This document shows positions 2,515 through 62,330 of a stretch of 64,000 nucleotides of DNA, one piece after another. Source of the DNA: Octopus bimaculoides (taxonomy: Eukaryota); assembly GCF_001194135.2 (NCBI RefSeq), contig NC_068983.1, forward strand, positions 93,940,951-94,004,950, given 5' to 3'. A program made the position numbers and the translations under genes. The notes under the pieces are model-generated. The model saw only the letters and a program-made list of their open reading frames with translations, had not been told where the DNA came from and ran no database searches. The stretch's first letter is position 1. Every line of letters starts with the position of its first letter.

Positions 2515-2722
2515 TTTGTTACAAGGGCAGCCATTTTGGGGAGGGAATGAGTTGATTACATCAACCCCAGTGTTCAACTGGTACTTGTTTCATCAACCCT
2601 GAAAGAATGAAAGGCAAAGTCAACTTTGGTGTGAATTTGAACTCAGAACAGAGTGACAGGCAAAATACCACTAAGCATTTCTTCCAGTGTACTAACGATT
2701 CTGCCAGCTTGCTGCCTTAATA
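2514..2722 (-). mobile_element. tRNA-derived SINE, family B (central GTCAACTTTGCCTTTCATCC-type domain)
   Basis: Reverse complement reads AAGGCAGCAAGCTGGCAGAATCGTTAG...GAGTTCAAATTC...GTTGACTTTGCCTTTCATTC...GTACCAG. It aligns by eye with copies at 14490-15065 and 43549-43762, and there is an (AAT)n run at the 3' end. Confidence 0.8.
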
Positions 2723-6679: not shown

Positions 6680-6735
<56 letters not shown>

Positions 6736-7045
6736 GATAAAATGAAGAGTGCAATGTAACTGCAATAAATATTTTATTGGTTGAATGATATTTTGACAGC
6801 AAGCTTGTCTTTGTTGAATTCAAAATAAAAAATTATAAAAATTCAAAATCATAGAAATTCAAATCAAAAGTATGAACGAGAGTAACCAGTGTCCCCATGT
6901 TGATGGAATGACATCATCAGTTTTTAGGTTTCAATTTTATAACTGGCAAAATAAAAAAAAGACAGATAAAAATAGAGAGAAAAAAAGGAAAGTAAAAGCA
7001 AAGATAAAAGAATATTCAATCAAACAGTTTTGTATAAATTTAATG

Positions 7046-7780
7046 TTATTCGCCTGTCATTTTATTCATTCTTCCAGAGTGTGAAGTTAGTAACCTGGAA
7101 ACATATTTCTCCTCATGCATTTTGAATATTGAAAGTGAAGCAGATTCAGAATATTTTCTAAGAATATGCACTTCCAAGCCTTTTTCAAAATTGCAGCCGT
7201 TTGAAGCAAGATGTTCAGCAAGTTCTGTTGAACTACTGTTATTGTGCCAGATGTCATATCTGTGCCCATTAAATCTTTTGCTTAATTGTTCTGTTGTGCA
7301 ACCAACATAAATCAAGTTGTATTTCGTGCATTCTACCACATACACCAAATGGGAATCTTTACATATCCCACCTTCTGTATAAATCAGAACATTTTTGTTA
7401 TGATTCCTGATGGAATTCACTTGATTCATGTTGTTGCACAATGAATAGAGCTTGCCTCTCTTGCAGCTGTTTTTCAAGGGAGAGCATGCAGGTACTCCAA
7501 TGTTAGTTTTCTTGGAGTCAAGAATAAAGGTCAATAGTTCCCTTATATTTTTATTCCGTCTAAAGGCTACAATAGGCAGCAGAGGAAATATCTGTTTGAA
7601 ATGAGGATATTTTTCTGCAACATGCTGGTAACTTTCATGCAATACTTTTTGAAATGCCAGCGAAAGTTTGATACCAGTTAATCACTAAAGGAATTCTGTT
7701 ACATATTGTATTGTGTTTGCTAAAATTATGCGTGAAGGTTTGACTTTCTTTGCTAATCTGAGGTATCCCATTTGCTATTT
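7046..7780 (-). mobile_element. Penelope-like retroelement, C-terminal linker plus GIY-YIG endonuclease (decayed)
   Basis: The 198-aa ORF 7046-7642 has LPIVAFRRNKNIRELL, LVYVVECTKYNLIYVGCTTEQLSKRFNGH and ELAEH, the PLE GIY-YIG signature. Upstream RIPLVINWY in another frame matches the PLE thumb/linker. Several conserved Cys are substituted. Confidence 0.85.
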
Positions 7781-12378: not shown

Positions 12379-12774
12379 NNNNNNNNNNNNNNNNNNNNNN
12401 NNNNNNNNNNNNNNNNNNNNNNNNNNNNNNNNNNNNNNNNNNNNNNNNNNNNNNNNNNNNNNNNNNNNNNNNNNNNNNNNNNNNNNNNNNNNNNNNNNNN
12501 NNNNNNNNNNNNNNNNNNNNNNNNNNNNNNNNNNNNNNNNNNNNNNNNNNNNNNNNNNNNNNNNNNNNNNNNNNNNNNNNNNNNNNNNNNNNNNNNNNNN
12601 NNNNNNNNNNNNNNNNNNNNNNNNNNNNNNNNNNNNNNNNNNNNNNNNNNNNNNNNNNNNNNNNNNNNNNNNNNNNNNNNNNNNNNNNNNNNNNNNNNNN
12701 NNNNNNNNNNNNNNNNNNNNNNNNNNNNNNNNNNNNNNNNNNNNNNNNNNNNNNNNNNNNNNNNNNNNNNNNNN
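12379..12774. other. Assembly gap (N run); other gaps at 14685-14694, 46023-46498, 49847-50150, 60280-60289
   Basis: Runs of N, mostly abutting (TA)n/(TG)n microsatellites. Confidence 1.
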
Positions 12775-12814: not shown

Positions 12815-12970
12815 ACTTCTTTCAGTTTCCATCTACCAAATCCACTCACAATGCTTTGGTTGGCCTGAGGTTATAGTAGAATATACTTGCCCAAGGTACC
12901 ATGCAGTAGGACTGAACCCAGAACCATGTGGTTGGGAAGCAAGCTTCTTACCACACAGCTATGCCTGCAC
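12815..12970 (-). mobile_element. SINE family A, tRNA-like head
   Basis: Reverse complement: GCTGTGTGGTAAGAAGCTTGCTTCCCAACCACATGGTTCTGGGTTCAGTCC...TTGGGCAAGT...GTGAGTGGATTTGGTAGATGGAAACTGAAAGAAG. Confidence 0.85.
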
Positions 12971-13010
12971 CTTGTATATATATATGTGTGGTGCGTGTAC
13001 ATATATATTC

Positions 13011-14489: not shown

Positions 14490-15062
14490 AAGGTGGTGAG
14501 CTGGCAGAATTGTTAACATAGGCGCAGGAGGGGCTGTGTGGTAAGTAGCTTGCTAACCAACCACATGGTTCCAGATTCAGTCCCACTGCGTGGCACCTTG
14601 GGCAAGTGTCTTCTACTATAGCCTCAGGCCGACCAAAGCCTTGTGAGTGGATTTGGTAGACAGAAACTGAAAGAAGCCCTTTGTNNNNNNNNNNATGTGT
14701 CCCAATATCGCTTGACATTGATGCTAGTGTGTTTACATCTCCATAACTTAGCAGTTCGGCATAAGAGACTGATAGAATAAGTACTAGGCTTACAAAGAAT
14801 AAGTCCTGGGGTCGATTTTCTCGACTAAAGGCGGTGCTCCAGCATGGCCCCAGACAAAATGACTGAAACGAATAAAAGAATACTGGATGAAATGCTTAGT
14901 GGTATTTCACCTGTTGCTACATTCTGAGTTCGAATTCAGTCAAGGTCAACTTTGCCTTTCATCCTGTCAGGGTCAATTAAATAAGTACCAGTTGAACACC
15001 AAGATCGATGTAATCAACTCATCCCCACCTCCCTCAAGCTGCCCTTGTGGCAAAAAATTGAA

Positions 15063-15065
<3 letters not shown>
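14490..15065 (+). mobile_element. SINE family B interrupted by a nested SINE family A
   Basis: Head AAGGTGGTGAGCTGGCAGAATTGTTAACATA (14490-14520) resumes as CTGGATGAAATGCTTAGTGG at ~14883 and ends in (ATT)n. Confidence 0.8.
14521..14882 (+). mobile_element. SINE family A, near full length
   Basis: GGCGCAGGAGGGGCTGTGTGGTAAG...TTCAGTCCCACTGCGTGGCACCTTGGGCAAGTG...GAAACTGAAAGAAG, then a central gap/microsatellite and a body ending GACTGAAACGAATAAAAG. Confidence 0.9.
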
Positions 15066-15110
<45 letters not shown>

Positions 15111-15112
<2 letters not shown>

Positions 15113-15215: not shown

Positions 15216-17054
15216 ATTAGTAGTAGTAATAGTATAAGTATTATCATCTTCAGCATTGTTGTCATTATCAGCATCATTATCATCACCACTATCACAATCA
15301 TCATTATCATCATCATCATTATTATTATTATTAATCATATTGGCCATTTATTTTTTTAGTACTTATTTATTGTAGGGACAGTAATAGAGTTGAGTACACC
15401 TATTGGCCTCTGAAGAATAAAAACAAAATAAAATGGCTTCATAAAGATGTCACCTTTTAACCATTACTTTAAATTTATACACATTCACAATTTTAATTGT
15501 TTCAGATAATTAGATAACTCTGCAACCAGTTTTTGTTATGGTTCTTCATTGAAATTATTGAATCTTGTTTGTTTACTGTTTGTTTGCTTTTGTTTTTGCT
15601 TCTGTTTTTGTTTTTTATTATATCTGTAATGTCCCATTTTCTTTTATTGAATTCGACATTTGTTGAATCAAACTGGCATGCTGGCATTTTGACCAAGACT
15701 TAGAAACAAATCCTTTTCTAATACAAATACATAAAGTTGAATTATATAAATAAGAAATGAACTCCAAAACAGTTATTTTTATGTTAATTCTCTGTCCTAA
15801 CTGTTGAATTATGTATGGTAATTCCTCAGACTACTTGCTTATCGTGATAATATATAAAAGATAGATAATTCTCTCTAAAACATTGCTGACATGAAGCAAC
15901 AAAAATGCTTTTAAAATTTTCTTTTGCTATTGATTTATGGTTTAGAGTAATCTTTTCTTGTTGGTTTTTAAGAACAGATTAACTTTGATATCAAAATATA
16001 TAAAGATATTCTATGCATTGAATCATCTTCATGTACAGAATTGATTGATTCTCTTATAGGTATTGGTGAATACTAAAAGAGAGGTAGAAATTGTCCATTA
16101 GAAAAATATTACAATCAGTATAAAGATAACTTGAGTCATGACTAAATAATTTCCTCTGATAATCAATAGAAAGAGAAAAACTAAGAAATGAAAGAGAATG
16201 AAACTAGTTTTTCCATAAGAAACTGCATAGTTAGAGCTTTAATAGTATCCTATTGTGCAATAATGGTCAAATACTTCTTACTATTATACATTAAAAACAA
16301 AAAAATAACTGTATATGTAGCAACAGTGCGTTTGATAATCATCAGTAGTACTATATATAATAACTATTATCATCATATTAGTTGTATAGCTAATGGTTTC
16401 ATCTTGGTCTGTTTGTCTATCTGTATGTCTGCATCTCTCTCTCTCTCTCTCCCTCGCTCTCCCCCCCCCTCTCTCTCTCTCTCTCTCTGTTTACACACAC
16501 ACACACATTTGATTTTCATCTGGAATCACTGTTTATGATCTTATAATATTATATGAGTGTGGACATTTATGTGTACAAATGGTGACTCATCAACTCCAAA
16601 TAAGCATATATCATTATCATTATCATTTGACAACAACAACAACAACATCATCATCATTATTTTATGTCTATTTTTCCATGCTGGCATGGTCTGGACAGGT
16701 CACATCAGTTGTTACAGTCCATAAGATCTTGTATACACTCAGCAGCAGTGAAAACTAACCGACCATGTTCTTGTGTGTATTTCATATTGTGGACAAGGCA
16801 CTTTTTTACATACCATTAACACTAGAAAGATTGTTCTATTTAGAAACAGTAAAGATACAAAGAAAAGGGTAGTAAAGAATCCCCTCTGCACTATATCAGT
16901 TCTTATTCACTGCCACTAACGTCCTAGGCAGGCAGTTTGCAATGTGGTTTGCAGAGTCTACCTCTCTTATGTATTTCCAATATTTTAGCTTAGTTTTTAT
17001 GGCTAGATGCCTTTCATGTCACCAACCACTTTATAGATTATACTAAATGCACCA

Positions 17055-17310
17055 TGAAGGCGCACAGCTAAGTGGTTAGGCTGTTACACTCACAATCACT
17101 AGATCATGGGCTCAGTTCCCAGAGTGGGCAGCACGTTGTGTTCTTGAGCAAACCACTTCAATTCATGTTGCTCTAGTCCTCATATCAGTCAGTGAGGAAT
17201 GTTAGCCTGCTCGCCTAGCCAGTGGAATGGTGTCATTTGAAACAATGCAAATGTGCATTGTGACCAGTGATGTGTAACGGCATCTGATAGCCTGGGCAGT
17301 CACGTATCAC
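17055..17310 (+). mobile_element. tRNA-derived SINE family F
   Basis: CAGCTAAGTGGTTAGG...GGGCTCAGTTCCC...TTGTGTTCTTGAGCAAACCACTT; head shared with 44496 and 62013. Confidence 0.75.
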
Positions 17311-17974
17311 TAGGTGCACCATGCCACTGACACTAGAGAGGCTACCCCATGCATGGAGGCTTAATAAATCCTCTGTACTTTCTGTCAGTTCTTACACAGA
17401 TTTGCTGCCCTCTGAGGTTAGTAACCTGTGATTTGGCTTGCAGAGTTCATGTCTTACTCGTAAATTTCTTCAACATAAGGATGCAGGCAAGCTTTAGTTA
17501 CTAAATGATTTGAAGACAAGGTGATATGATGTGACTTGGAAAAATGTTTGTTTTTGTTATGTAGAGATATCATAGCTGACTTAGCATTAGACTGTCTCCA
17601 CAGTGCTAAATAGTATATTGAGAAGTTCTCTCAGGAATTTTAGTAAGTAGTCACATTCAAATTGGTAGGGGTAGCTGATTTGTTATATCAACACATAGAA
17701 ACTACAATATTTTATGTAAATCTATGTCTGAGTTTTGTGTTTCAGTAGTTTATTCTCTTAGATGTGTTAACTTTACTGAAGATTAAATATGAGCAGACAT
17801 TTCTTAAAGAAGAGAGATATAGAATAGACAACTATTTAATTTAAGTTGATGATAAATGAGATGACAGAGGACCAAGAGAGATAACAGAGGACTGAGATAT
17901 GTGGTGCATTGCTCTACTCAAGAAAACACTCACCATAACAAAATTGAGATCCTAAAATCAAGGTGCCACATAAA

Positions 17975-18150: not shown

Positions 18151-19072
18151 CCCTGAGAGGCTAAGTTTATGCATTGTTGAGTAGGCTCAAGGGAGATAGA
18201 GAATAATATAGTGAAAGATTGGAAGAAGAGAAATAAAAGAACAATATATTAAGGAGTATAGGAAAAAAACAAACTATAGTATTTGATTCAATAGAGGTTG
18301 GAGTTTACCCTCCATCCATGGCAAACTGGTTGAGACAGCTTAAAGAAATAATGTATTACTCATAGAACATATGAGCTCCCTTTCCTTGTACTTGTCTTAC
18401 AAGACTTTGCCGTCCATGTATGGGCTTAGTTCCATTGCAAGCTTTGAGTTTCAGCATTGTCTATTAACAAAACACTTACTGATTATACAGTGACTCGCCA
18501 ATTATACATTACCTCCCCATTTATACTGTCTCATTAATTATGCAGTGCATACAGTCATGATGTAACCTGACAAAAAGTTTGTCTCCATTATGTAGAGATA
18601 TCCTTGCTGGCTTGGTGTCAGGCTGTCTCACACACCAAGGCTTTGTAATGCTTAAATTTATTTCCTTTCCTGTGATATACACTGCTGTGTATGAAAAAAC
18701 ATTGTTTTTAATTCATAAAGAAACATCAAAAGCACAAATATGCAAATTAAGCTATCCACCAAGGTGCTAGTCTAATTTTTGACTGCATTATATTGCAGCT
18801 AATGTGTTACGCTATTGATTGGGGATGGAAGCCAAGTATGTCTTTTCTGAAGAGTGGCTAACAATTCATAAGGAAACTCCTTCCATCTTTTTCCTTTATA
18901 TCAATAGCATAGAACCTGTTTACATTCTTATTTAACCTACAGTGAGGTGGTTTATGTTGTGTTGTGCATAATATATGTATGCATATATCATTATTATCAT
19001 CTTTTAACATCCATTTTCCATGATAGATATATATAAATATATATCTGTGTGTGTGTGTGCGTGCGCATGCAT

Positions 19073-19104
<32 letters not shown>

Positions 19105-19421
19105 TGCTGGGTAACAGTCCAGATATGCACACACAGGTATATTATAATGTATTTCTATGCATTAATTTAGTTTTCAGTATCTGTTTTATTTCTGGTTGTT
19201 TTGTCTTATATAAGTGAGGTTTATTTATATTAGCTTATATACAATAGCTGTCAGTTGTTGTCCTGTTATGTAAACCTCAGTCCATTCACATCATTACAAG
19301 TGAACCTCAAAGAAAAGACTCCAATAACAAACGAAATTTTATCTCAATATTATTATGATTTGCTTTGCAGCAAATCATTTGGATCGCTAATGCCTTTCTT
19401 TTACTGACATCTTTATTGCAG

Positions 19422-27223: not shown

Positions 27224-27508
27224 TGTATGTATGTATGTATGTATGAATGAATGTATTTATATGTAGGAAGTGAGAAAAAACATATATCTATATACATGCA
27301 TACATATATATATATATGTGTGTGTGTGTATGTGTGTGTACACACACACACACATACACACACACACATACATATGTATATATATATATATATATAATAT
27401 AATATAGGATAAATTCTTTATAAGAATTTATCAAGTAGTCAGCGTGAAAAAACCTCAAAATGAAAAAAAAACGAAAAATTTCGTAATGAAAAAATTCATC
27501 ATTTCTTC

Positions 27509-41435: not shown

Positions 41436-41840
41436 CTCCTGTAGCTATGTGGTAAGAAGCTTGCTTCCCAACCATATAGTTCCAAGTTCAGTCCCACTGT
41501 GAAGCACCTTTACCAAGTGTCTTCTATTATAGCCTCAGGCTGACCAAAGCCTTCTGAGTGGATTTGGTAGACAGAAACTGAAAGAAACTTGTTGTTTATA
41601 TACATGTATATATCTATGTGTGTGTCTTTGTGTCTGTGTTTGTCCCCCACCAGCACTTGATAACCTGTGTTGGTGTGTTTGCAACCCCTTGACTTAGCAT
41701 TTCAGCAAAAGAGTTCAATAGAATAAGTACTAGGCTTAAAGAAAAAGTACCAGGGTTGATTCATTTAACTAAAAAAATGTTCAAGACGGTACCCCAGCAT
41801 GGCTGCAGTCTAATGACAGAAATAAGTAAATGATAAAAGA
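41436..41840 (+). mobile_element. SINE family A, full length
   Basis: Head GTAGCTATGTGGTAAGAAGCTTGCTTCCCAACC..., body, and tail GACAGAAATAAGTAAATG. Confidence 0.88.
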
Positions 41841-44492: not shown

Positions 44493-44495
44493 GGT

Positions 44496-44837
44496 AAAGG
44501 TGTAAGGCTCAGTGGCTAGAGCATCAGGCTCCCACTCATGAAGTAGTGAGTTCAATTCCCAGACCAGGATGTGTGTTGTGTTCTTGAGCAAGACACTTTA
44601 TTTCACATTGCTCCAGTTTACTGAGCTGTTGAAATGAGTTGTGACATCACTGGTGCCAAGCTGTATTGACCTTTGCTTTTTCTCCTTGGATAACATCAGT
44701 AGCATGGAGAGGGGAAGCTGGTATGCATGTGTAATGGCTGGTCTTCCATAAACAACCTTGCCCGAACTTGTACCTCAGGAGATAACTTTCTAGGTGCAAT
44801 CCCATGGTCATTCATGACCAAAAGGGGTCTTTACTCT
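44496..44837 (+). mobile_element. tRNA-derived SINE family F variant
   Basis: GGCTCAGTGGCTAGAGCATCAGGCTC...GAGTTCAATTCCC...GTTCTTGAGCAAGACACTTTATTTCAC. Confidence 0.85.
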
Positions 44838-46020: not shown

Positions 46021-46498
46021 CANNNNNNNNNNNNNNNNNNNNNNNNNNNNNNNNNNNNNNNNNNNNNNNNNNNNNNNNNNNNNNNNNNNNNNNNNNNNNN
46101 NNNNNNNNNNNNNNNNNNNNNNNNNNNNNNNNNNNNNNNNNNNNNNNNNNNNNNNNNNNNNNNNNNNNNNNNNNNNNNNNNNNNNNNNNNNNNNNNNNNN
46201 NNNNNNNNNNNNNNNNNNNNNNNNNNNNNNNNNNNNNNNNNNNNNNNNNNNNNNNNNNNNNNNNNNNNNNNNNNNNNNNNNNNNNNNNNNNNNNNNNNNN
46301 NNNNNNNNNNNNNNNNNNNNNNNNNNNNNNNNNNNNNNNNNNNNNNNNNNNNNNNNNNNNNNNNNNNNNNNNNNNNNNNNNNNNNNNNNNNNNNNNNNNN
46401 NNNNNNNNNNNNNNNNNNNNNNNNNNNNNNNNNNNNNNNNNNNNNNNNNNNNNNNNNNNNNNNNNNNNNNNNNNNNNNNNNNNNNNNNNNNNNNNNNN

Positions 46499-46554: not shown

Positions 46555-47782
46555 GAGGTCATTAAGAATGAAATGTCCGATTTTGGACTGAAAGTTTATT
46601 TTACTTTATCTCAACACAATTTTGCCACTTTATCGGTAGCTTCTTTAGGCTGGCAGTGAAGAATTCTGGAGAGAAAGAGGTGATGAAATCATGAAAGGCT
46701 GTTTTTGTATCTTCTCCAGATTTGAACCTTTTTCCTTGCAAAAGTTATCTAATGCCTGGAAAATGTGATAGTTAGATGGTGCAAGATCTGGTGAATAGGG
46801 TGGATGACAGAGTATTTCCAAGTGCAGTTCCTGTAACCCAAGTAGCATTCTTTGTGCAACATGTGGTCAAACATTGTCTTGCAAGAGAATTGCCCTGTAT
46901 CTGTTGACCAATCTCAGTTGTTTAATTGCATGTTCACTCAAGATTTCGTCTAATTGGTTGATGTATATATCCACTGTAATTGACTTACCAAGTCTCATGA
47001 AGCTGTAGTGGATGACACCAATGCTGGACCACCAAACAAACACCATTAGCTTTTTTTGGTAAATATTCTTTTTTGGGTTGTTTTGACACTTTGTCTCTAT
47101 CCAACCACCATGCAGAACACTTGCTATTGTTGAAAAGAATCTATTTTTCATCACACATAACAATACAATGCAAAAACAGTTCACTTTTATGCATGACAGC
47201 AAAGAACAGCAAGTTTCAAGATGACGTGTCATTTGACCCTCATTCAGTTCATGTGGTACCCACTTGTCCAGCTTCTTTATCTTGCCAATTTGTTTCAGAT
47301 GGTCCAATACAGTTGGAATCAAAACATCAGACCTTGCTGCTAACTTATGCACAGTTTGAGATGTATCCACTTCCACTAAAGTCTCCAGCTCATCACCTAA
47401 CTTGGTCTCAGGTCTACTACTGGACTGATTTTCAAGAGTAAAGTCACCAGATCAGAACTTCTCAAACCATCAACATACAGTGCACTTATTTGCCACATCT
47501 TCACCAAACACCTCATTGATGTTTCAAGCTGTCTGGGATGCATTGGTTCCATGATGGAACTCATATTCATAAACAACACAAATTTTTTATCTATCCATGG
47601 GTCCACAAAAATTTACAAGAGAAAACTCACAATATAACCAGACACCATAATTGCATTTCGAAAGGTGATTATGTAACTCTTCAATGTTGTAAAACAAAGA
47701 ACTGTCAAGATAAAACATTAAAATTAATGACTGTCAAAATTGGTGCATAAGAAAATCGGACATTTCATTCTTAATGACCTGA
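46551..47782 (-). mobile_element. Near full-length mariner (Hsmar1/cecropia-like), frameshifted transposase
   Basis: TIRs TCAGG(AGG)TCATTAAGAATGAAATGTCCGATTTT / AAAATCGGACATTTCATTCTTAATGACCTGA, in (TA)n flanks. KKLDKWVPHEL, KKLMVFVWWS, ILLQDNV and HPPYSPDLAPSNY (third catalytic D changed to N). Confidence 0.95.
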
Positions 47783-49718: not shown

Positions 49719-51117
49719 CTGTGTGTATACACATATATATATATTGATGTTTGTATTCATGTGTGTGCATATATATATATGTATATGTATAAATATGTTT
49801 ATATTTATATATGTATAAATATGAATATGTATATATATATATGTATNNNNNNNNNNNNNNNNNNNNNNNNNNNNNNNNNNNNNNNNNNNNNNNNNNNNNN
49901 NNNNNNNNNNNNNNNNNNNNNNNNNNNNNNNNNNNNNNNNNNNNNNNNNNNNNNNNNNNNNNNNNNNNNNNNNNNNNNNNNNNNNNNNNNNNNNNNNNNN
50001 NNNNNNNNNNNNNNNNNNNNNNNNNNNNNNNNNNNNNNNNNNNNNNNNNNNNNNNNNNNNNNNNNNNNNNNNNNNNNNNNNNNNNNNNNNNNNNNNNNNN
50101 NNNNNNNNNNNNNNNNNNNNNNNNNNNNNNNNNNNNNNNNNNNNNNNNNNTATAGATGTGTTGAAATATATGTATGCTTTACACATACTCACACACACAT
50201 ATATAAATGTGTCAAAATATATGTATGTTATATATGTGTGTGTGTATTATATAAATATATATTTATATGAATGTATACATATCATATAAATATATATTTA
50301 TATGTTTGTAAATATGTGATATAAATATATATTTAGATATATGTATGTATACACACACATACACACACACATATATATATGTATGTATACAGACACACAC
50401 ACACACACACACACAAACATGTATATAAATTTTATCAGTTTCACTTTTATATAGAAATGATCTGAAATTGCATTTTGTAATTTTTTTTTTGTTTATTTAA
50501 AAATACAAAATTTCAATTTTTCAATACAAATGCAATAACCAAATAAAATAAAATGAAATAAAATAAAAGCACAACAGTTGTATTATCTTTTGTTTACTGG
50601 AATAGATGGAGCATGATTCTCAAATAGACTGAGACATAAGACTCAGCTTTAAGTAGGATATTTAAATCTCTCTTGGTACTATTTCTCACCATTGTAATGC
50701 TAAGTGATGCAAGAAAATTTCTCTTCATCACAAATACGTCCACCCTTTGTTCTTTCCCTCCACTGGGCCATTAATATCAATGGAATATATTGCCTAGAAA
50801 ACTACATGGAGATTTATTTCAAAATTTTACTTAAACATTAAGAAAGAAAATAAACACTTTGCAATGAACATTAAATTATTTATGCTTTTTAGATTTATAC
50901 AATTGAATAATAAAAATAATGAATCATTTTTATTATATGAATCTTTTTTCTCCCTCCTTATTACTACTCAAAACAAGTAATCAATTTTTGTTTGTTTCTC
51001 CTTAATACTAAATAACCAAGGCAAGTTTCTTTTTGTTAATACTACTTGTGTGCTTTTCCTATGCTTTTGCTTGCAACATTCATTGTCAATAACTGTTTAC
51101 TTGCACCCTAACTACAG

Positions 51118-53953: not shown

Positions 53954-55232
53954 TGAGGGGTGTTCATTGAAGATTTCTCCTGACCCAATTCCCAAGGACT
54001 GGGATAAACAAAACTTGGCATAATTATTAGTCCCTCTCTACATGGCCACCACCAATGGTGACACACTTCTCTCATTGCTTTATGCAGCTGTGCAGACCTC
54101 ATCTGTAGAAGTCAGTAGGTTGTGTCTGAAGCAAAGACTTTATCTCACAGATAAGTTCATCATCTGAAAAGTGCTTCCCCTTCAAAAAAGACTTCATGGT
54201 TGGAAAGAGATAAAAGTCAGATGGTGCAAGGTCAGGAGAGTAAGGGGGATGAGGAAGGATTTCTTAGCTGCAGGAGTGTGCTTTCATCCAGGCAATATGC
54301 ACATTGTGAACTGGGGTGTTGTCTTGGAGAAGACAGACTCCTTTGGTCAGCATGCCACACCTCTCTTCTTTGACAACGTGCCACAGTTTTTGCAACAGAG
54401 AGGTATATGCCCCATTAATTGTGGTGCCCTTTGCCAGAAAATCCATCATCACTACTCCACACTGGTCCCAAAATACTGTAAGCATCACCCTGCCTGCTGA
54501 GGGTTGGACACAAGCCTTCTTTGAAAGTGGTGAGTTATTGTGCTTCCATTGTTTCGACTGGACTTTAGGCTCAGGATCATAGTGATGGACCAGTGTTTCA
54601 TCCTGTTTGATAAGTCTGCCAAGAAAGTCCTCCTCATTTTCTTAGCACATTGCCAAAAGAGCCTGGGAGCAATTTACTCATTGCTGCTTCTGAAAAGGTG
54701 TGAGTATCTAAGGAATCCATCGTGCAGACAACTTTCGCATGTGCAAATGGTCATGAATGATTTTTTCCACAGACCCTAGACTTATCTTCACTTCTTGGGC
54801 TAATTGCAGAATAGTTATGAGGTGTTCCTCCAAAACAGTGGCTTCCACTTTATGGATGGTGTCATCATCATTGGTGGAATGTAGCTGTCCAGGAATAGGA
54901 GCAGTCTCTGCCAATGTCCAACCACATTTAGCAATGCCAGTGCTTGACTACATTGTATGAGGGTGCATCATTACCATACACTTCTTTCAACCCATCAAAA
55001 GTCTCTTTTGATGTACAATCTTTCAAGTATAATAACCTGATCACTGATCGGCATTCAACTGCCTCCATTATAACACCTTAGTCCACTTCAGCAGCCATAA
55101 AAGACAAACGGATACTAGTGGAAAGCTACAATTTACAATGTGACATGTAGAGACATGTATGATTATATTTGTACAAGTTCTATTTCCTGCACTAACCAGA
55201 AGTGGGTCAAGGGAAATTCCCTTCTAGACACA
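53954..55232 (-). mobile_element. Near full-length decayed mariner (irritans/Himar1/Hsmar2-like)
   Basis: TA|TGAGGGGTGTTCA left end, eroded right TIR (TGGGTCAAGGGAAATT). Fragments LKEVYGNDAPSYNVVKHW, HMRKLSARWIP, DETLVHHYDPE, VMLTVFWD, LLQDNTPVH, HPPYSPDLAPSDF. Confidence 0.92.
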
Positions 55233-55667: not shown

Positions 55668-56617
55668 GCATTCCTTGAGATTATTGAAACAGCAGAGAGA
55701 CAGAGATAGAGAGAGTGAGAGGTAGGAGAGATCATGGGGTAAGAAGAGAAAAAGATGCATAATGTGAGCATTACATTCATAATAGGGACAATAGTAGGAA
55801 GTTAGAGAAAGAATAAGTGAATGGAGAATATTAGGGGGAGAGAAAGAAAGCTAGAGGCTTGCTTATCTAAATTTTTTTTTTTATTATTGTAACATATATA
55901 ATTTAAGAGTACTAAAGTAAGTTTATTACAATTTGTTTTAGCAAGTGCACACATTATTTGATACAGAACTCAGTACAGTTGGTAGAGTAGATAAATATAT
56001 CAAACAGTGAGTCTATTCTGAGTTGCCCCCTTAGTTGGGCTATGTATGTATATGTATGTATATAGGTAGGTATGTATATATGTATATGTGCTTATATTCA
56101 AGTATGTATGTTTGTTCATTCATTCATTTTCTTCTGTTTTTAATTATTTAAATTCCTCCTCTGAGGAAAGAGCTGGTTTCTAACAAGGATTCAAAGCTCC
56201 ATTGTTGGAATGTAGGTAACAAAAACAAATGTCACATTTGAAACTTGAGAAAAGTCTTGAATATTTTTACTGCTCCACTTACAGATTGTATTTGTAATGT
56301 TTGAGTTAGCTGGTTGATTTCTTTTTCTGAAAACCCTCACTTATTCAGATTGTCATTTACTCACATTTGGCATTTACTCACAAAACTAAGTGCACCAATT
56401 ATTATTGGTATGAATGTGAAGTTATTATCTGGATATAAAAGTTGGAGGTTTCAAAGTAGATGTCCATAGTTATCTTTTTCCTTTGGTTTTCAAAGAGATG
56501 TTCACATCAACAGGACAGCTGACTCCTATGATGGTTCATAAGTATGTATTGTGTGCATGCATATATTATGTATATTTGTGTGTGTGTATGTCTGTGTGTG
56601 TGCATGTGTGTGTATGC

Positions 56618-56688
<71 letters not shown>

Positions 56689-57607: not shown

Positions 57608-59268
57608 AACACACAAGCACGCGCGCACACGCACACACACTCACACACACACACGCGCACATGCATGCACACATATACATTTTAATGATCGAGTTGCAAA
57701 GCAGACAGCAGAGGAATAATTAAGGTCTATTCCATTTTAGAATGGAAACCTTCCAAGTAGTTAATTAAAATTAATGAGACAAATTGCGCAAAGAGAAGTA
57801 CAAGTGTGTAGAATTTTATTTCATTTTAATTTTATTAAGACAGCGAGGGGTTTCATTCACCTAGACAGTGTAATTTAGAATAGTTTCGGAGCCACATTGA
57901 TGTCTCCAACTCTAAGATAATATTAGGACTAATCTAGGTTAGAGTTGGAAGAAGTATTCAGGGAAAGCACTGGGAGTCAGTAATTCGGATTAATGTTCAA
58001 TCCACTGAAGCTCCAAATTTGATATTAGTGAGAGAAGGTGGGAGACATTAACTTGATGTAGCACTAGAATTATTGTCTCTATAGCCACTAATCCACTAAT
58101 TTGGAGTAGTCTTGTAGGTACTAATCTTGATATAAGCTATGGAGAAAGCAGTGAACTGGCAGAATCATCAAAATGCCGAGCAGCATTTCTTCCAACACAC
58201 ACACATATATATCATCATCATCATCATCATTATCATCGTTGTTTCACGTCCGCTTTCCATGCTGGCATGGGTTGGATGGTTTGACTGAGGGCTAGCATGC
58301 CAGAAGGCTGTACCAGGCTCCAATCCGATCTGACAAAGTTTCTACAGCTGGTTGCCCTTCCTAACACCAACCACTCTGAGAGTGTAGTGGGTACTTTTTA
58401 TGTGCCACCAGCATGGGAGCCAGTCAGGTAACACTGGCAATGACCAGGCTCAAATGGTGCTTTTTACGTGCCACCGACATGGGGCCAGTCAGCTGGCACT
58501 GGCATCAACCACGCTCCAATGCCTCTGTTATTGCCTGGAGGACTATGATGAATAAGAGGATCTGAGGACTGATCCTTGGTGGACCACTATCCCTACCCGG
58601 AATTCTTCACTGTACTCATTGCCAACTCTCACCTTACTTACAGCATCCCTGTATATGGCTTGTACAGCTCTCACTAACCATTCATCTATCCCTAGTTCCC
58701 ACATTGACCACCAGATAAAGGACTGGGGGACCCTGTCAAAGGCTTTCTCCATGTCAACGAAAGCCAGGTACAGAGATTTATCCCTGGCTAGGTATTTCTC
58801 CTGCAGCTGTCTTACAAGAAATATAGCATCAGTGCTGCTTTTCCCTGGCACAAACCCAAACTGCATCTCATCTAGACTGACTCTCTCCCTAAGTAGTTGG
58901 GCTATGATCCTCTCCATGTCTTTCATTACCTGATTCAATAGCTTGATACCTCTGTAATTATTCATATCTAATGCATCGCCTTTACCTTTGTAGCAGTTGA
59001 CTATGATGCTGCTACACCAGTCATTGGGTATGACTCCTTCATATATTGACTATATGGATGACTAGACTATAGCCAATACCACCAGATATTTTAAGCATTT
59101 CTGCAGTGATTCTTGATGGGCCAGGGGTTTTCCCAGTGTTCATGCTCTTAATTGCTTTATCTACCAAGGTACTGTCAGTTCGGATAGCTGGTCCCTCTGT
59201 TGGGTTGACATTTGGCAGACTCTCTTTCTCCCATTCATTTTCTTCTTTTAGCAACCTTTCATTGTGGT

Positions 59269-59421
59269 TTACATGATTTACATTTGATGGATATTTGTCC
59301 TCATCTTGTTTGTTGTTAACACAACATTTCGGCTGATATACCCTCCAGCCTTCATCAGGTGTCTTGGGGAAATTTCGAACCTGGGTTCTCGTTCCTAAGA
59401 TATTTTTCAATGTTGTTGTTG

Positions 59422-59469
<48 letters not shown>

Positions 59470-59657
59470 TCACTACCTGGAATTGAACTCAGAATCTTGG
59501 AGTTAGTAGCCCATGCTCTTAACCACTATGCCATATTCTCATGGTATATCAGCCAAAATGTTGTGTTAACAACAAACAAGATGAGGATAAATATTTGTCA
59601 AATGTAAATAATGTAAATAATGTAAATAATTCCTCATCTCTTAAATATAGAACTGTA
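59269..59657 (-). mobile_element. Hammerhead-bearing tRNA-headed SINE-like insertion with 5' inverted partial copy and 13-bp TSD
   Basis: TSD CTTTCAT(T/A)GTGGT at 59256-59268 and 59658-59670. Minus strand: A box TGGCATAGTGG, B box GAGTTCAATTCC, (AAT)n(AAC)n, hammerhead, tail. 59543-59657 is an inverted copy of the hammerhead 3' half plus tail. Confidence 0.85.
59318..59363 (-). ncRNA. Minimal type-I hammerhead ribozyme
   Basis: GACAC-CTGATGA-A-GGCTG-GAGGGTATAT-CAGCC-GAAA-TG-T-T-GTGTT. The core is intact, stem II is 5 bp, stem I is GACAC/GTGTT, and stem III is vestigial (ATGT, probably ACGT before CpG decay). Confidence 0.8.
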
Positions 59658-60162
59658 CTTTCATAGTGGTGTCTCCAAGTCTCTCTCCTTGCAGCCTCAT
59701 TAAATGCAAAGGAGCCATCATCCATGTGGACACATTTTTCTCCTATGACATCCCAATTCTCTCTCACACACTGTCTTGCAGCATGAAATGCCTTGAATCT
59801 TTGGTCCTCACGATGCAGAACATTGGCAAATTTTTTCTTACCTGGTTCCCTTCTTGCTAAATAAACCTGTCTCCTAGCTTCCTTTCTGGCAGTCTGATAC
59901 AATTCCCTGCTACTACCGTTCTTCCAGTCCTTCCATGCCTGTTTCTTTTCCCTAACGGCCTTGTCAACTACATTGTTCCACCTTGGATTGAGAGGAGACT
60001 TTGCACTTTCCACAGATCTGGTCAATAGCCCTCAACAGGTTGTCCTGTAGAAACCTACAGTTGTCTTCCACATCATATAATGCTATATCCCCCTCTATTT
60101 TGTCAAATGCTTCGAGTAATACATCTCTAAATTTCTATCCATTCGCAGGATCCTTATGCTTT

Positions 60163-60279: not shown

Positions 60280-60289
60280 NNNNNNNNNN

Positions 60290-61990: not shown

Positions 61991-62012
61991 CATATTCTTC
62001 AGCTGCTAACAT

Positions 62013-62330
62013 GAAGGCATGTTGCTTAGTGGTTAGAGTATTCAGCTCATGATCGTAAGGTCATGAGTTCAATTTCCAGTAACACATTGTATCCTTGAGC
62101 AAGACACTTTATTTCATGTTGCTCCAGTGCACTCACCTGTCAAAAATGAATAGTACCTGTATATCAAAGGGCCAACCTTGTCACATTCTGTGTCATGCTA
62201 ACTCTCCCTGAGAACTACATTAAGGGTACATGTGTTTGTGGAGTGCTCAACTACATGTTAATTTCACAAACAGGCTGTTCCATTGATCGGATCAACTAGA
62301 ACCATCATCGTCATAACCAACAGAGTACCA
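62013..62330 (+). mobile_element. tRNA-derived SINE family F
   Basis: GCTTAGTGGTTAGAG...GAGTTCAATTTCC...CCTTGAGCAAGACACTTTATTTCATGTTGCTCCAGT. Confidence 0.85.

Follow-up and report, generated by a model that had tools for sequence, protein, structure and literature searches.

The locus described here is a 389-bp insert at positions 59269–59657 of a 64-kb stretch of Octopus bimaculoides DNA (contig NC_068983.1, positions 93,940,951–94,004,950), hereafter the window. The insert is non-coding and lies between the two copies of a target-site duplication (TSD), the left one, CTTTCATTGTGGT, at 59256–59268 and the right one, CTTTCATAGTGGT, at 59658–59670, which match at 12 of 13 positions. It interrupts the minus-strand open reading frame (ORF) of an RTE element, the downstream part of which matches Pfam RVT_1. 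Once 59269–59670 is excised, this frame reads without interruption as ...AARRETWRHH(N/Y)ERLLKEENEWEKESL... (also written RRETWRHH(N/Y)ERLLKEENEW), and the excised-junction query, WRHHYERLLKEE, aligns gaplessly across the junction (WRQHYERLL) with an RTE-type homologue, WRQHYERLLNEE. At the position of the right TSD the homologue reads HYERLL, and the right TSD retains the ancestral Tyr codon of the RTE ORF. Because the TSD, the continuous frame and the gapless homologue alignment are found together, the limits of the insertion could be fixed to the nucleotide, with all of 59269–59657 being inserted sequence. These observations support the conclusion that the 389-bp insert is one retro-insertion with a TSD inside an older RTE element, and they bear out a preliminary description of this DNA, which had reported a 13-bp TSD restoring the interrupted RTE frame. 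For the ORF that runs through the element, we found no word-sharing candidate, and an exhaustive search of representative proteins gave one match, to a poly-Leu stretch.

The host RTE copy (58543–60031, minus strand) is itself degraded: it carries a frameshift near 59040–59050, its ORF stops at 58546 within the reverse transcriptase (RT) domain, and upstream it disappears into a CA/TA microsatellite, where there is a 10-N gap (60280–60289). When the RTE RT was used as a query, the best protein matches reached only ~55% identity, and the contig of the top match came from an unrelated eukaryote with only the RT in common.

The larger part of the insert is a main unit of 274 nt on the minus strand (59269–59542), apparently full-length, which consists of a tRNA-like head, a microsatellite, a spacer, a hammerhead motif and a tail. 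In the head (59466–59542, minus strand), an A box, TGGCATAGTGG, at 59533–59523 matches TRGCNNAGTGG at 11/11 positions, and a B box, GAGTTCAATTC-C, lies 44 nt downstream at 59489–59479 and matches at 9/11 (two mismatches); 0.13 A/B-box pairs of this kind are expected per shuffled window. The head scored 16.5 bits against the Rfam tRNA model, below the gathering score of 29, and ARAGORN called no tRNA there, from which we take it to be a tRNA-derived pseudo-head and not a tRNA gene. Like the related heads belonging to short interspersed nuclear elements (SINEs) in the window, it starts with ..ATGA.., and it aligns over ~85 nt with those at 62018+, 17067+ and 44505+, from the common 5′ ..CATGA.. 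onward, the similarity stopping exactly where the other SINEs enter their "cttgagcaagacactt" CORE domain. Sequence comparison thus supports its assignment as a tRNA/CORE-SINE head of Pol III type, homologous to those of the other SINEs in the window. The 5′ end of the main copy coincides with the native start of the SINE head, which would fit a full-length Pol III transcript, and not random 5′ truncation of a longer element.

In the place occupied by the CORE domain in the homologous SINEs, the main unit carries an internal microsatellite, (AAT)13(AAC)5 (minus strand, 59465–59412). This is followed by a 48-nt spacer (59364–59411, minus strand), which includes a second B-box-like sequence, GGTTCGAAA, at 59381–59373 and shows no similarity to anything else in the 64-kb window. 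The tail (59269–59317, minus strand) comprises an 8-nt palindrome, UGUUAACA, at 59321–59314, which overlaps helix I of the hammerhead motif, a local hairpin, GAUGAGGA/UCCAUC, at 59305–59286, and, at its 3′ end, the 9-mer AATGTAAAT in about two units. There is no TTTT terminator on the sense strand of the 274-nt unit, so a Pol III transcript could read through it. The minus-strand tRNA-like head with A and B boxes and the (AAT)n of the preliminary description were therefore both recovered, and its claim of a tRNA-promoter retroelement agrees with the TSD-flanked retro-insertion, the Pol III-type head and the lack of TTTT.

Between the spacer and the tail, at 59318–59363 on the minus strand, lies a minimal type-I hammerhead motif. 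It was found with a descriptor built from the published architecture of the minimal hammerheads of Penelope-like elements (PLEs; PMC4209133): a helix I of at least 4 bp, CUGANGA, 0–1 unpaired nucleotides, a helix II with a minimum of 4 bp and G10.1-C11.1 as its closing pair, GAAA, 0–2 nucleotides, U, H and the return strand of helix I. This was the single match on both strands of the window (128 kb searched). The relaxed descriptor is expected to match by chance 0.0025 times per window (400 dinucleotide-preserving shuffles), and at the observed stringency 0/400 shuffles gave a match, which supports the conclusion that the hammerhead-like motif lies far beyond chance.

Helix I consists of 5 bp including one G.U (GACAC, 59363–59359, with GUGUU, 59322–59318) and leads into the core, CUGAUGA (59358–59352, C3 being 59358), which matches the descriptor. 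An unpaired A (59351) separates A9 from G10.1, and helix II, of 6 bp including one G.U, is closed by G10.1-C11.1 (GGCUGG, 59350–59345, with UCAGCC, 59336–59331) and bears loop II at 59344–59337. The GAAA box (59330–59327) is followed by U15.2 and G16.2 (59326–59325), U16.1 (59324) and U17 in the H17 position (59323), and cleavage is predicted between 59323 and 59322. All of the conserved core (C3-U-G-A-N-G-A9, G12-A-A14, A15.1/U16.1 and an H17 that is not G) is present. The hammerhead fold was computed at -13.0 kcal/mol versus a minimum free energy of -13.8 kcal/mol, and would thus be energetically accessible.

In the minimal hammerheads of PLE pseudo-long terminal repeats (pLTRs), one nucleotide stays unpaired between A9 and G10.1, G10.1 pairs with C11.1, helix II is long, helix I is short (4–5 bp) and there is no real helix III; such motifs are often dispersed singly or as close opposite-strand pairs (Cervera & de la Pena 2014; PMC4209133). 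The first four traits are reported by the authors to have come to light in addition to those of their own descriptor. The octopus motif resembles them in its intact core, its unpaired nucleotide, its G10.1-C11.1 pair, its 6-bp helix II, its 5-bp helix I and its lack of a real helix III, whereas it differs in its 15.2/16.2 positions (UG), which are not palindromic in the Watson-Crick sense, in having neither a PLE ORF nor a pLTR attached, and in its link to a Pol III head. We consider it probable that the motif is a minimal PLE-type hammerhead by descent, with putative activity.

Head-to-head with the main unit and abutting its head, an inverted 5′-truncated copy (59543–59617, sense on the plus strand) begins within loop II and extends as far as the tail, as the preliminary description had indicated. 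The two arms, 59268–59342 and 59543–59617, are 75 nt each and 92% complementary; the inner end of the inverted copy corresponds to 59342, within loop II, and the locus holds one complete hammerhead motif only. Of the 6/75 differences between the arms, five are transitions and three are adjacent (CCA/TTG), and G12 is an A in the inverted copy. With 6/75 differences between the arms and 1/13 between the TSD copies, both pairs have diverged by ~8%, which is consistent with a single event. Given the adjacent CCA/TTG change, each arm may derive from its own, slightly different RNA molecule, which hints weakly at more than one source copy. Because the inverted arm lies outside the head, the transposed unit comprised head, microsatellite, hammerhead and tail together, and because one 3′ segment occurs in two copies of opposite orientation, the arrangement is not a product of twin priming of one RNA.

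A one-sided extension of 28–40 nt (59618–59657, plus strand) continues the inverted copy with further 9-mer repeats and then a unique 28 nt, TTCCTCATCTCTTAAATATAGAACTGTA; it is not present at the opposite end of the insert. The inverted arm has three 9-mer units at 59601–59630, and in the arm together with its extension (59543–59657) a 9-bp hairpin, AGAUGAGGA/UCCUCAUCU, encloses the 9-mer repeats (z = -3.1; 0/200 shuffles as stable).

The two arms offer alternative hairpins, the main copy pairing GAUGAGGA locally with UCCAUC, and differ by the adjacent CCA/TTG change. The possibility that the 28-nt extension is RTE target sequence was rejected by the homologue alignment. A reading of the insert as a plus-strand element with a (GTT)n(ATT)n tail was likewise rejected, as there is no A box on that strand and the tRNA head would sit downstream of the common 75 nt, an arrangement that is meaningless for a Pol III element.

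PLE insertions are reported to combine an inverted 5′-truncated copy adjoining the 5′ end, a 30–40-bp extension at one end only and a TSD (Craig et al. 2021; PMC8557442). All three are seen here: the octopus insert has an inverted 5′-truncated copy by the 5′ end, a one-sided extension and a TSD, but it has neither the tandem/pLTR arrangement nor the RT/GIY-YIG coding capacity of PLE insertions. By analogy, the inverted 5′-truncated copy and the one-sided ~30-nt extension are supported as the published Penelope insertion signature. Evgen'ev and Arkhipova (2005) are likewise cited for this architecture. Two other ways of arriving at such an arrangement have to be weighed. Long inverted arms at both ends together with a flanking direct repeat would also be presented by a miniature inverted-repeat transposable element or a DNA transposon of foldback type whose terminal inverted repeats are 75 bp long; however, the termini are asymmetric, with the 28–40-nt extension at one end only, and the Pol III head lies inside the insert, at the start of one arm-delimited unit. 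A 13-bp TSD is, moreover, atypical for cut-and-paste superfamilies and counts against a DNA transposon, an origin that we regard as very improbable.

Alternatively, the insert could have arisen by nested events, in which a PLE-type inverted pair of 5′-truncated fragments entered the RTE element and a tRNA-SINE with (AAT)n was later inserted at their junction. The flanks of the head plus microsatellite do show weak similarity (ATGAGAATAT versus ATTGAAAAATAT), and SINEs account for a large part of such genomes (PMC13282606). We nevertheless think this course of events improbable: gaps are required to align the putative inner TSD, an AT-rich sequence of low complexity, the inner SINE would be a 3′-truncated CORE-SINE head and not a product of target-primed reverse transcription (TPRT), and the junction would need to have been hit within a few nucleotides.

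We looked for further copies of the unit in the 64-kb window using exact and 3-mismatch patterns, blastn (word size 7) and nhmmer with the head, body and arm, and found none; the matches were limited to (AAT)n loci and a weak resemblance of the head to other SINEs, so that the collection of copies envisaged in the preliminary description yielded no second member within the window. Nor did the window contain a direct (head-to-tail) repeat of the unit. Exact-pattern scans with the tail and then the head gave 0 matches in metagenome contigs and 0 in prokaryotic genome and viral contigs, collections apparently without the source organism.

The lack of a second copy bears on the possibility that the insert is a one-off chimera, in which a PLE-type RT working on a PLE-derived or retrozyme-like RNA switched template to a CORE-SINE RNA, in the manner of the U6/L1 chimeras. 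Other SINE families do recur in the same 64 kb, and the head can be described as a 3′-truncated CORE-SINE head joined via a microsatellite. In a template switch, however, the second RNA would be expected to be joined by its 3′ end and not at a point ~78 nt into the SINE, and 54 nt of pure microsatellite after an internal SINE joint is not expected from template switching; the clustered CCA/TTG arm difference also hints at two source molecules. We consider a chimera of this kind unlikely.

The window holds one 5′-truncated PLE, at 6681–7681 on the minus strand, with a 211-aa GIY-YIG ORF at 7049–7681 (Pfam E = 6e-5) that includes the motif FRRNKNIRELL, and a 3′ untranslated region of ~315 nt ending directly in (AAT)18 (6734–6681). 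No recognisable RT was present upstream of the GIY-YIG ORF, and the endonuclease ORF had no homologue in the protein collections searched. This ORF shows that PLEs occur in the source genome, which we count in favour of PLE involvement. A CTGATGA ~130 nt after the PLE stop (~6920, minus strand) was rejected as a hammerhead, having no GAAA box and a helix II of 3 bp.

SINEs are by definition parasites of long interspersed nuclear elements (LINEs), and the insert could accordingly be read as an ordinary LINE-dependent SINE with an RTE, CR1 or L2 partner, its hammerhead motif being vestigial or fortuitous and its inverted copy an aberrant TPRT product. The tail of the main copy would suit this, since it has a hairpin at 59305–59286 and then 9-mer repeats at its 3′ end, whose number differs between the arms as RT slippage would give; in addition, the genome is RTE-rich and the motif has no Rfam hammerhead match. 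On the other hand, chance would give the full minimal-hammerhead architecture 0.0025 times per window; in twin priming, upstream sequence is inverted but the 3′ end is not duplicated, while here a 75-nt 3′ segment occurs twice; the repeats of the longer arm lie within a hairpin loop and not at the terminus; and the tail is shared with no LINE in the window. We therefore hold LINE dependence to be unlikely as well.

Several known systems share parts of this arrangement. The closest functional analogues are Sm-alpha and Sj-alpha of schistosomes, tRNA-derived SINE-like retroposons bearing hammerheads (PMC2770079; PMC8490949), and the precedent for such repeats that the preliminary description had seen in Sm-alpha was confirmed from PMC2770079. 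As in the octopus, these are short non-coding retroposons of tRNA-derived Pol III type with a type-I hammerhead motif. Sm-alpha, however, is a very abundant, partly tandem flatworm repeat, and its hammerhead is canonical and catalytically proven, with loop-loop contacts; the octopus element has a minimal PLE-type motif without helix III and one known copy, its head is of CORE-SINE type, and it further differs in having an internal microsatellite and an inverted 5′ copy.

Metazoan non-LTR retrozymes are tandem, circRNA-forming elements with a canonical type-I hammerhead, are said to lack promoters (PMC7761336), and have been argued to derive from PLE pLTRs (Li et al. 2026, preprint, bioRxiv 10.64898/2026.07.22.740005). 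The likeness is that they, too, are short, non-coding and hammerhead-bearing, and are thought to be PLE parasites derived from pLTRs (Cervera & de la Pena 2020; Li et al. 2026), whereas the octopus unit is solitary, has a Pol III head and was copied from an uncleaved linear template. Neither a head-to-tail repeat of the unit nor a canonical hammerhead, both traits of the retrozymes, was found at the locus. Among octopus repeats, tRNA-Core SINEs dominate (PMC8967140); these have a head homologous to that of the insert, in which, by contrast, the CORE domain and usual tail are replaced by (AAT)n(AAC)n and the hammerhead/tail module. No description of a Pol III head combined with a PLE-type minimal hammerhead and a PLE-type scar, or of hammerheads in cephalopod SINEs, was found in a literature coverage that is incomplete. 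The novelty in cephalopods suggested earlier thus holds as far as prior descriptions go, but it is tempered by Sm-alpha/Sj-alpha and the non-LTR retrozymes, which are close precedents.

Taken together, the architecture is indicative of a hammerhead-bearing retroelement of PLE type with a Pol III head, and the earlier interpretation of the locus is partly supported. The most economical reading, which we favour with some reserve, is that of a composite SINE in which a CORE-SINE head is joined to a PLE-derived 3′ module with a minimal hammerhead, and which would be transcribed by Pol III and integrated in the PLE manner. With similar reserve, we would regard the insert as one old insertion of this composite non-coding retroelement, now a decayed copy. 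Its 5′ module would correspond to the initial ~78 nt of a tRNA-derived SINE of CORE type, in which the Pol III promoter is internal, and the 3′ ~190 nt beyond the (AAT)n(AAC)n joint would be a Penelope-type minimal hammerhead and structured tail. Pol III may initiate at the head and read through the T4-free unit, after which an RT would recognise the 3′ module; this would most likely be a PLE RT, the module having been borrowed from a PLE 3′/pLTR region. Priming by the tail at both sides of a staggered break might then have given the products whose structure is seen at the locus, namely a full-length copy, an inverted copy lying head-to-head with it and truncated at its 5′ end, a ~30-nt extension on one side and a 13-bp TSD.

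The hammerhead would be, in this composite SINE, an inherited part of the PLE-derived recognition module and not a step needed for this insertion. We read it as a recognition module and not a processing step because the main and the inverted copies both span the predicted cleavage site (59323|59322): the reverse-transcribed templates were evidently uncleaved, ribozyme cleavage would not have been part of this insertion, and a structural or recognition role of the hammerhead is favoured. Uncleaved templates agree with what is reported of minimal hammerheads, which show no activity as monomers and cleave poorly in vitro even as dimers (PMC4209133). The self-cleavage proposed in the preliminary description thus found no support at this locus.

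The same crossing of the cleavage site is, for an element credited with a ribozyme, one of several points that weigh against the composite SINE. A single copy was seen, giving no family consensus, covariation or second insertion. The Rfam hammerhead models gave no match at E<=10 in 58800–60100 or at E<=0.1 in the whole window, although this is expected because the motif is without helix III and the Rfam models describe canonical ribozymes with helix III; the "intact hammerhead" of the preliminary description therefore stands for the catalytic core of a minimal, helix-III-less motif, but not for a canonical ribozyme. Its "palindromic stem III" also needs qualifying, as the 15.2–16.2 palindrome is absent in Watson-Crick form and A-U-G-U is self-complementary only via two G.U wobbles. 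Helix I competes with a local hairpin, UUGUGUUAACAACAA. The tail stem-loop and short tandem repeats also resemble the tails of stringent LINE-dependent SINEs. Finally, the tail and 3′ module show no similarity to the 3′ region of the window's only PLE fragment (7049–7681), which was thus not the PLE sharing hammerhead or tail that had been anticipated. The earlier claim that the element uses PLE rather than LINE machinery rests on the insertion architecture, no PLE with a matching tail having been found in the window.

More broadly, octopus-type genomes might harbour a Pol III SINE family with a hammerhead-bearing PLE 3′ end in place of a LINE-derived tail, mobilised by a PLE RT/GIY-YIG endonuclease, a proposal that we put forward tentatively and with considerable doubt. 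Hammerhead-bearing short elements such as Sm-alpha and the retrozymes are only now being tied to PLEs, and an element in which a tRNA promoter is combined with a PLE-type minimal hammerhead and a PLE-type scar would, if truly so composed, link these classes and imply that PLE machinery is open to hijack by Pol III transcripts. If the family is real, it would represent a SINE-PLE partnership outside flatworms and a promoter-carrying relative of retrozymes; the element would also be a small, tractable substrate for examining the role of minimal hammerheads, as recognition module or in processing. If the insert is instead a one-off chimera, it would be a curiosity of limited consequence.

The repeat content of the window (CORE-type tRNA SINEs, RTE, PLE and mariner elements, at 34% GC) fits published descriptions of octopus genomes. 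CORE-type tRNA SINEs, in which the head is followed by cttgagcaagacactt..., lie at 44495–44830, 62005–62300 and 17054–17400, all on the plus strand. Copies of a second tRNA-SINE family (ggctgtgtggtaagaagcttgc...ccttgggcaagtgtcttctac...gaaactgaaagaag) were found at 12892–12973 (minus strand) and at 14516–14680, 41437–41600, ~23095 and ~45865 (plus strand); these usually lie directly next to TA/CA microsatellites, and two of them border assembly gaps. A third SINE type, at ~14900–15110 (plus strand) and ~2515–2680 (minus strand), has a sense-strand (ATT)n tail (...ggcaaaaaattgaa(ATT)n), and at 15111 another 5′ SINE head begins directly after such a tail. Assembly gaps (N runs), in most cases with (TA)n at their edges, are present at 12379–12774, 46023–46498, 49847–50150, 14685–14694 and 60280–60289, and misjoins may affect the adjacent repeats. 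Rfam also gave many sub-threshold matches to mir-297, mir-466, mir-1277 and mir-3149 (e.g., 27303–27397, 19036–19108 and 56588–56658), all of them on TA/CA microsatellites; these were rejected as artefacts. Two mariner-type transposase fragments, at 46870–47451 and 54267–54641 on the minus strand, match Pfam Transposase_1 with E ~1e-15.

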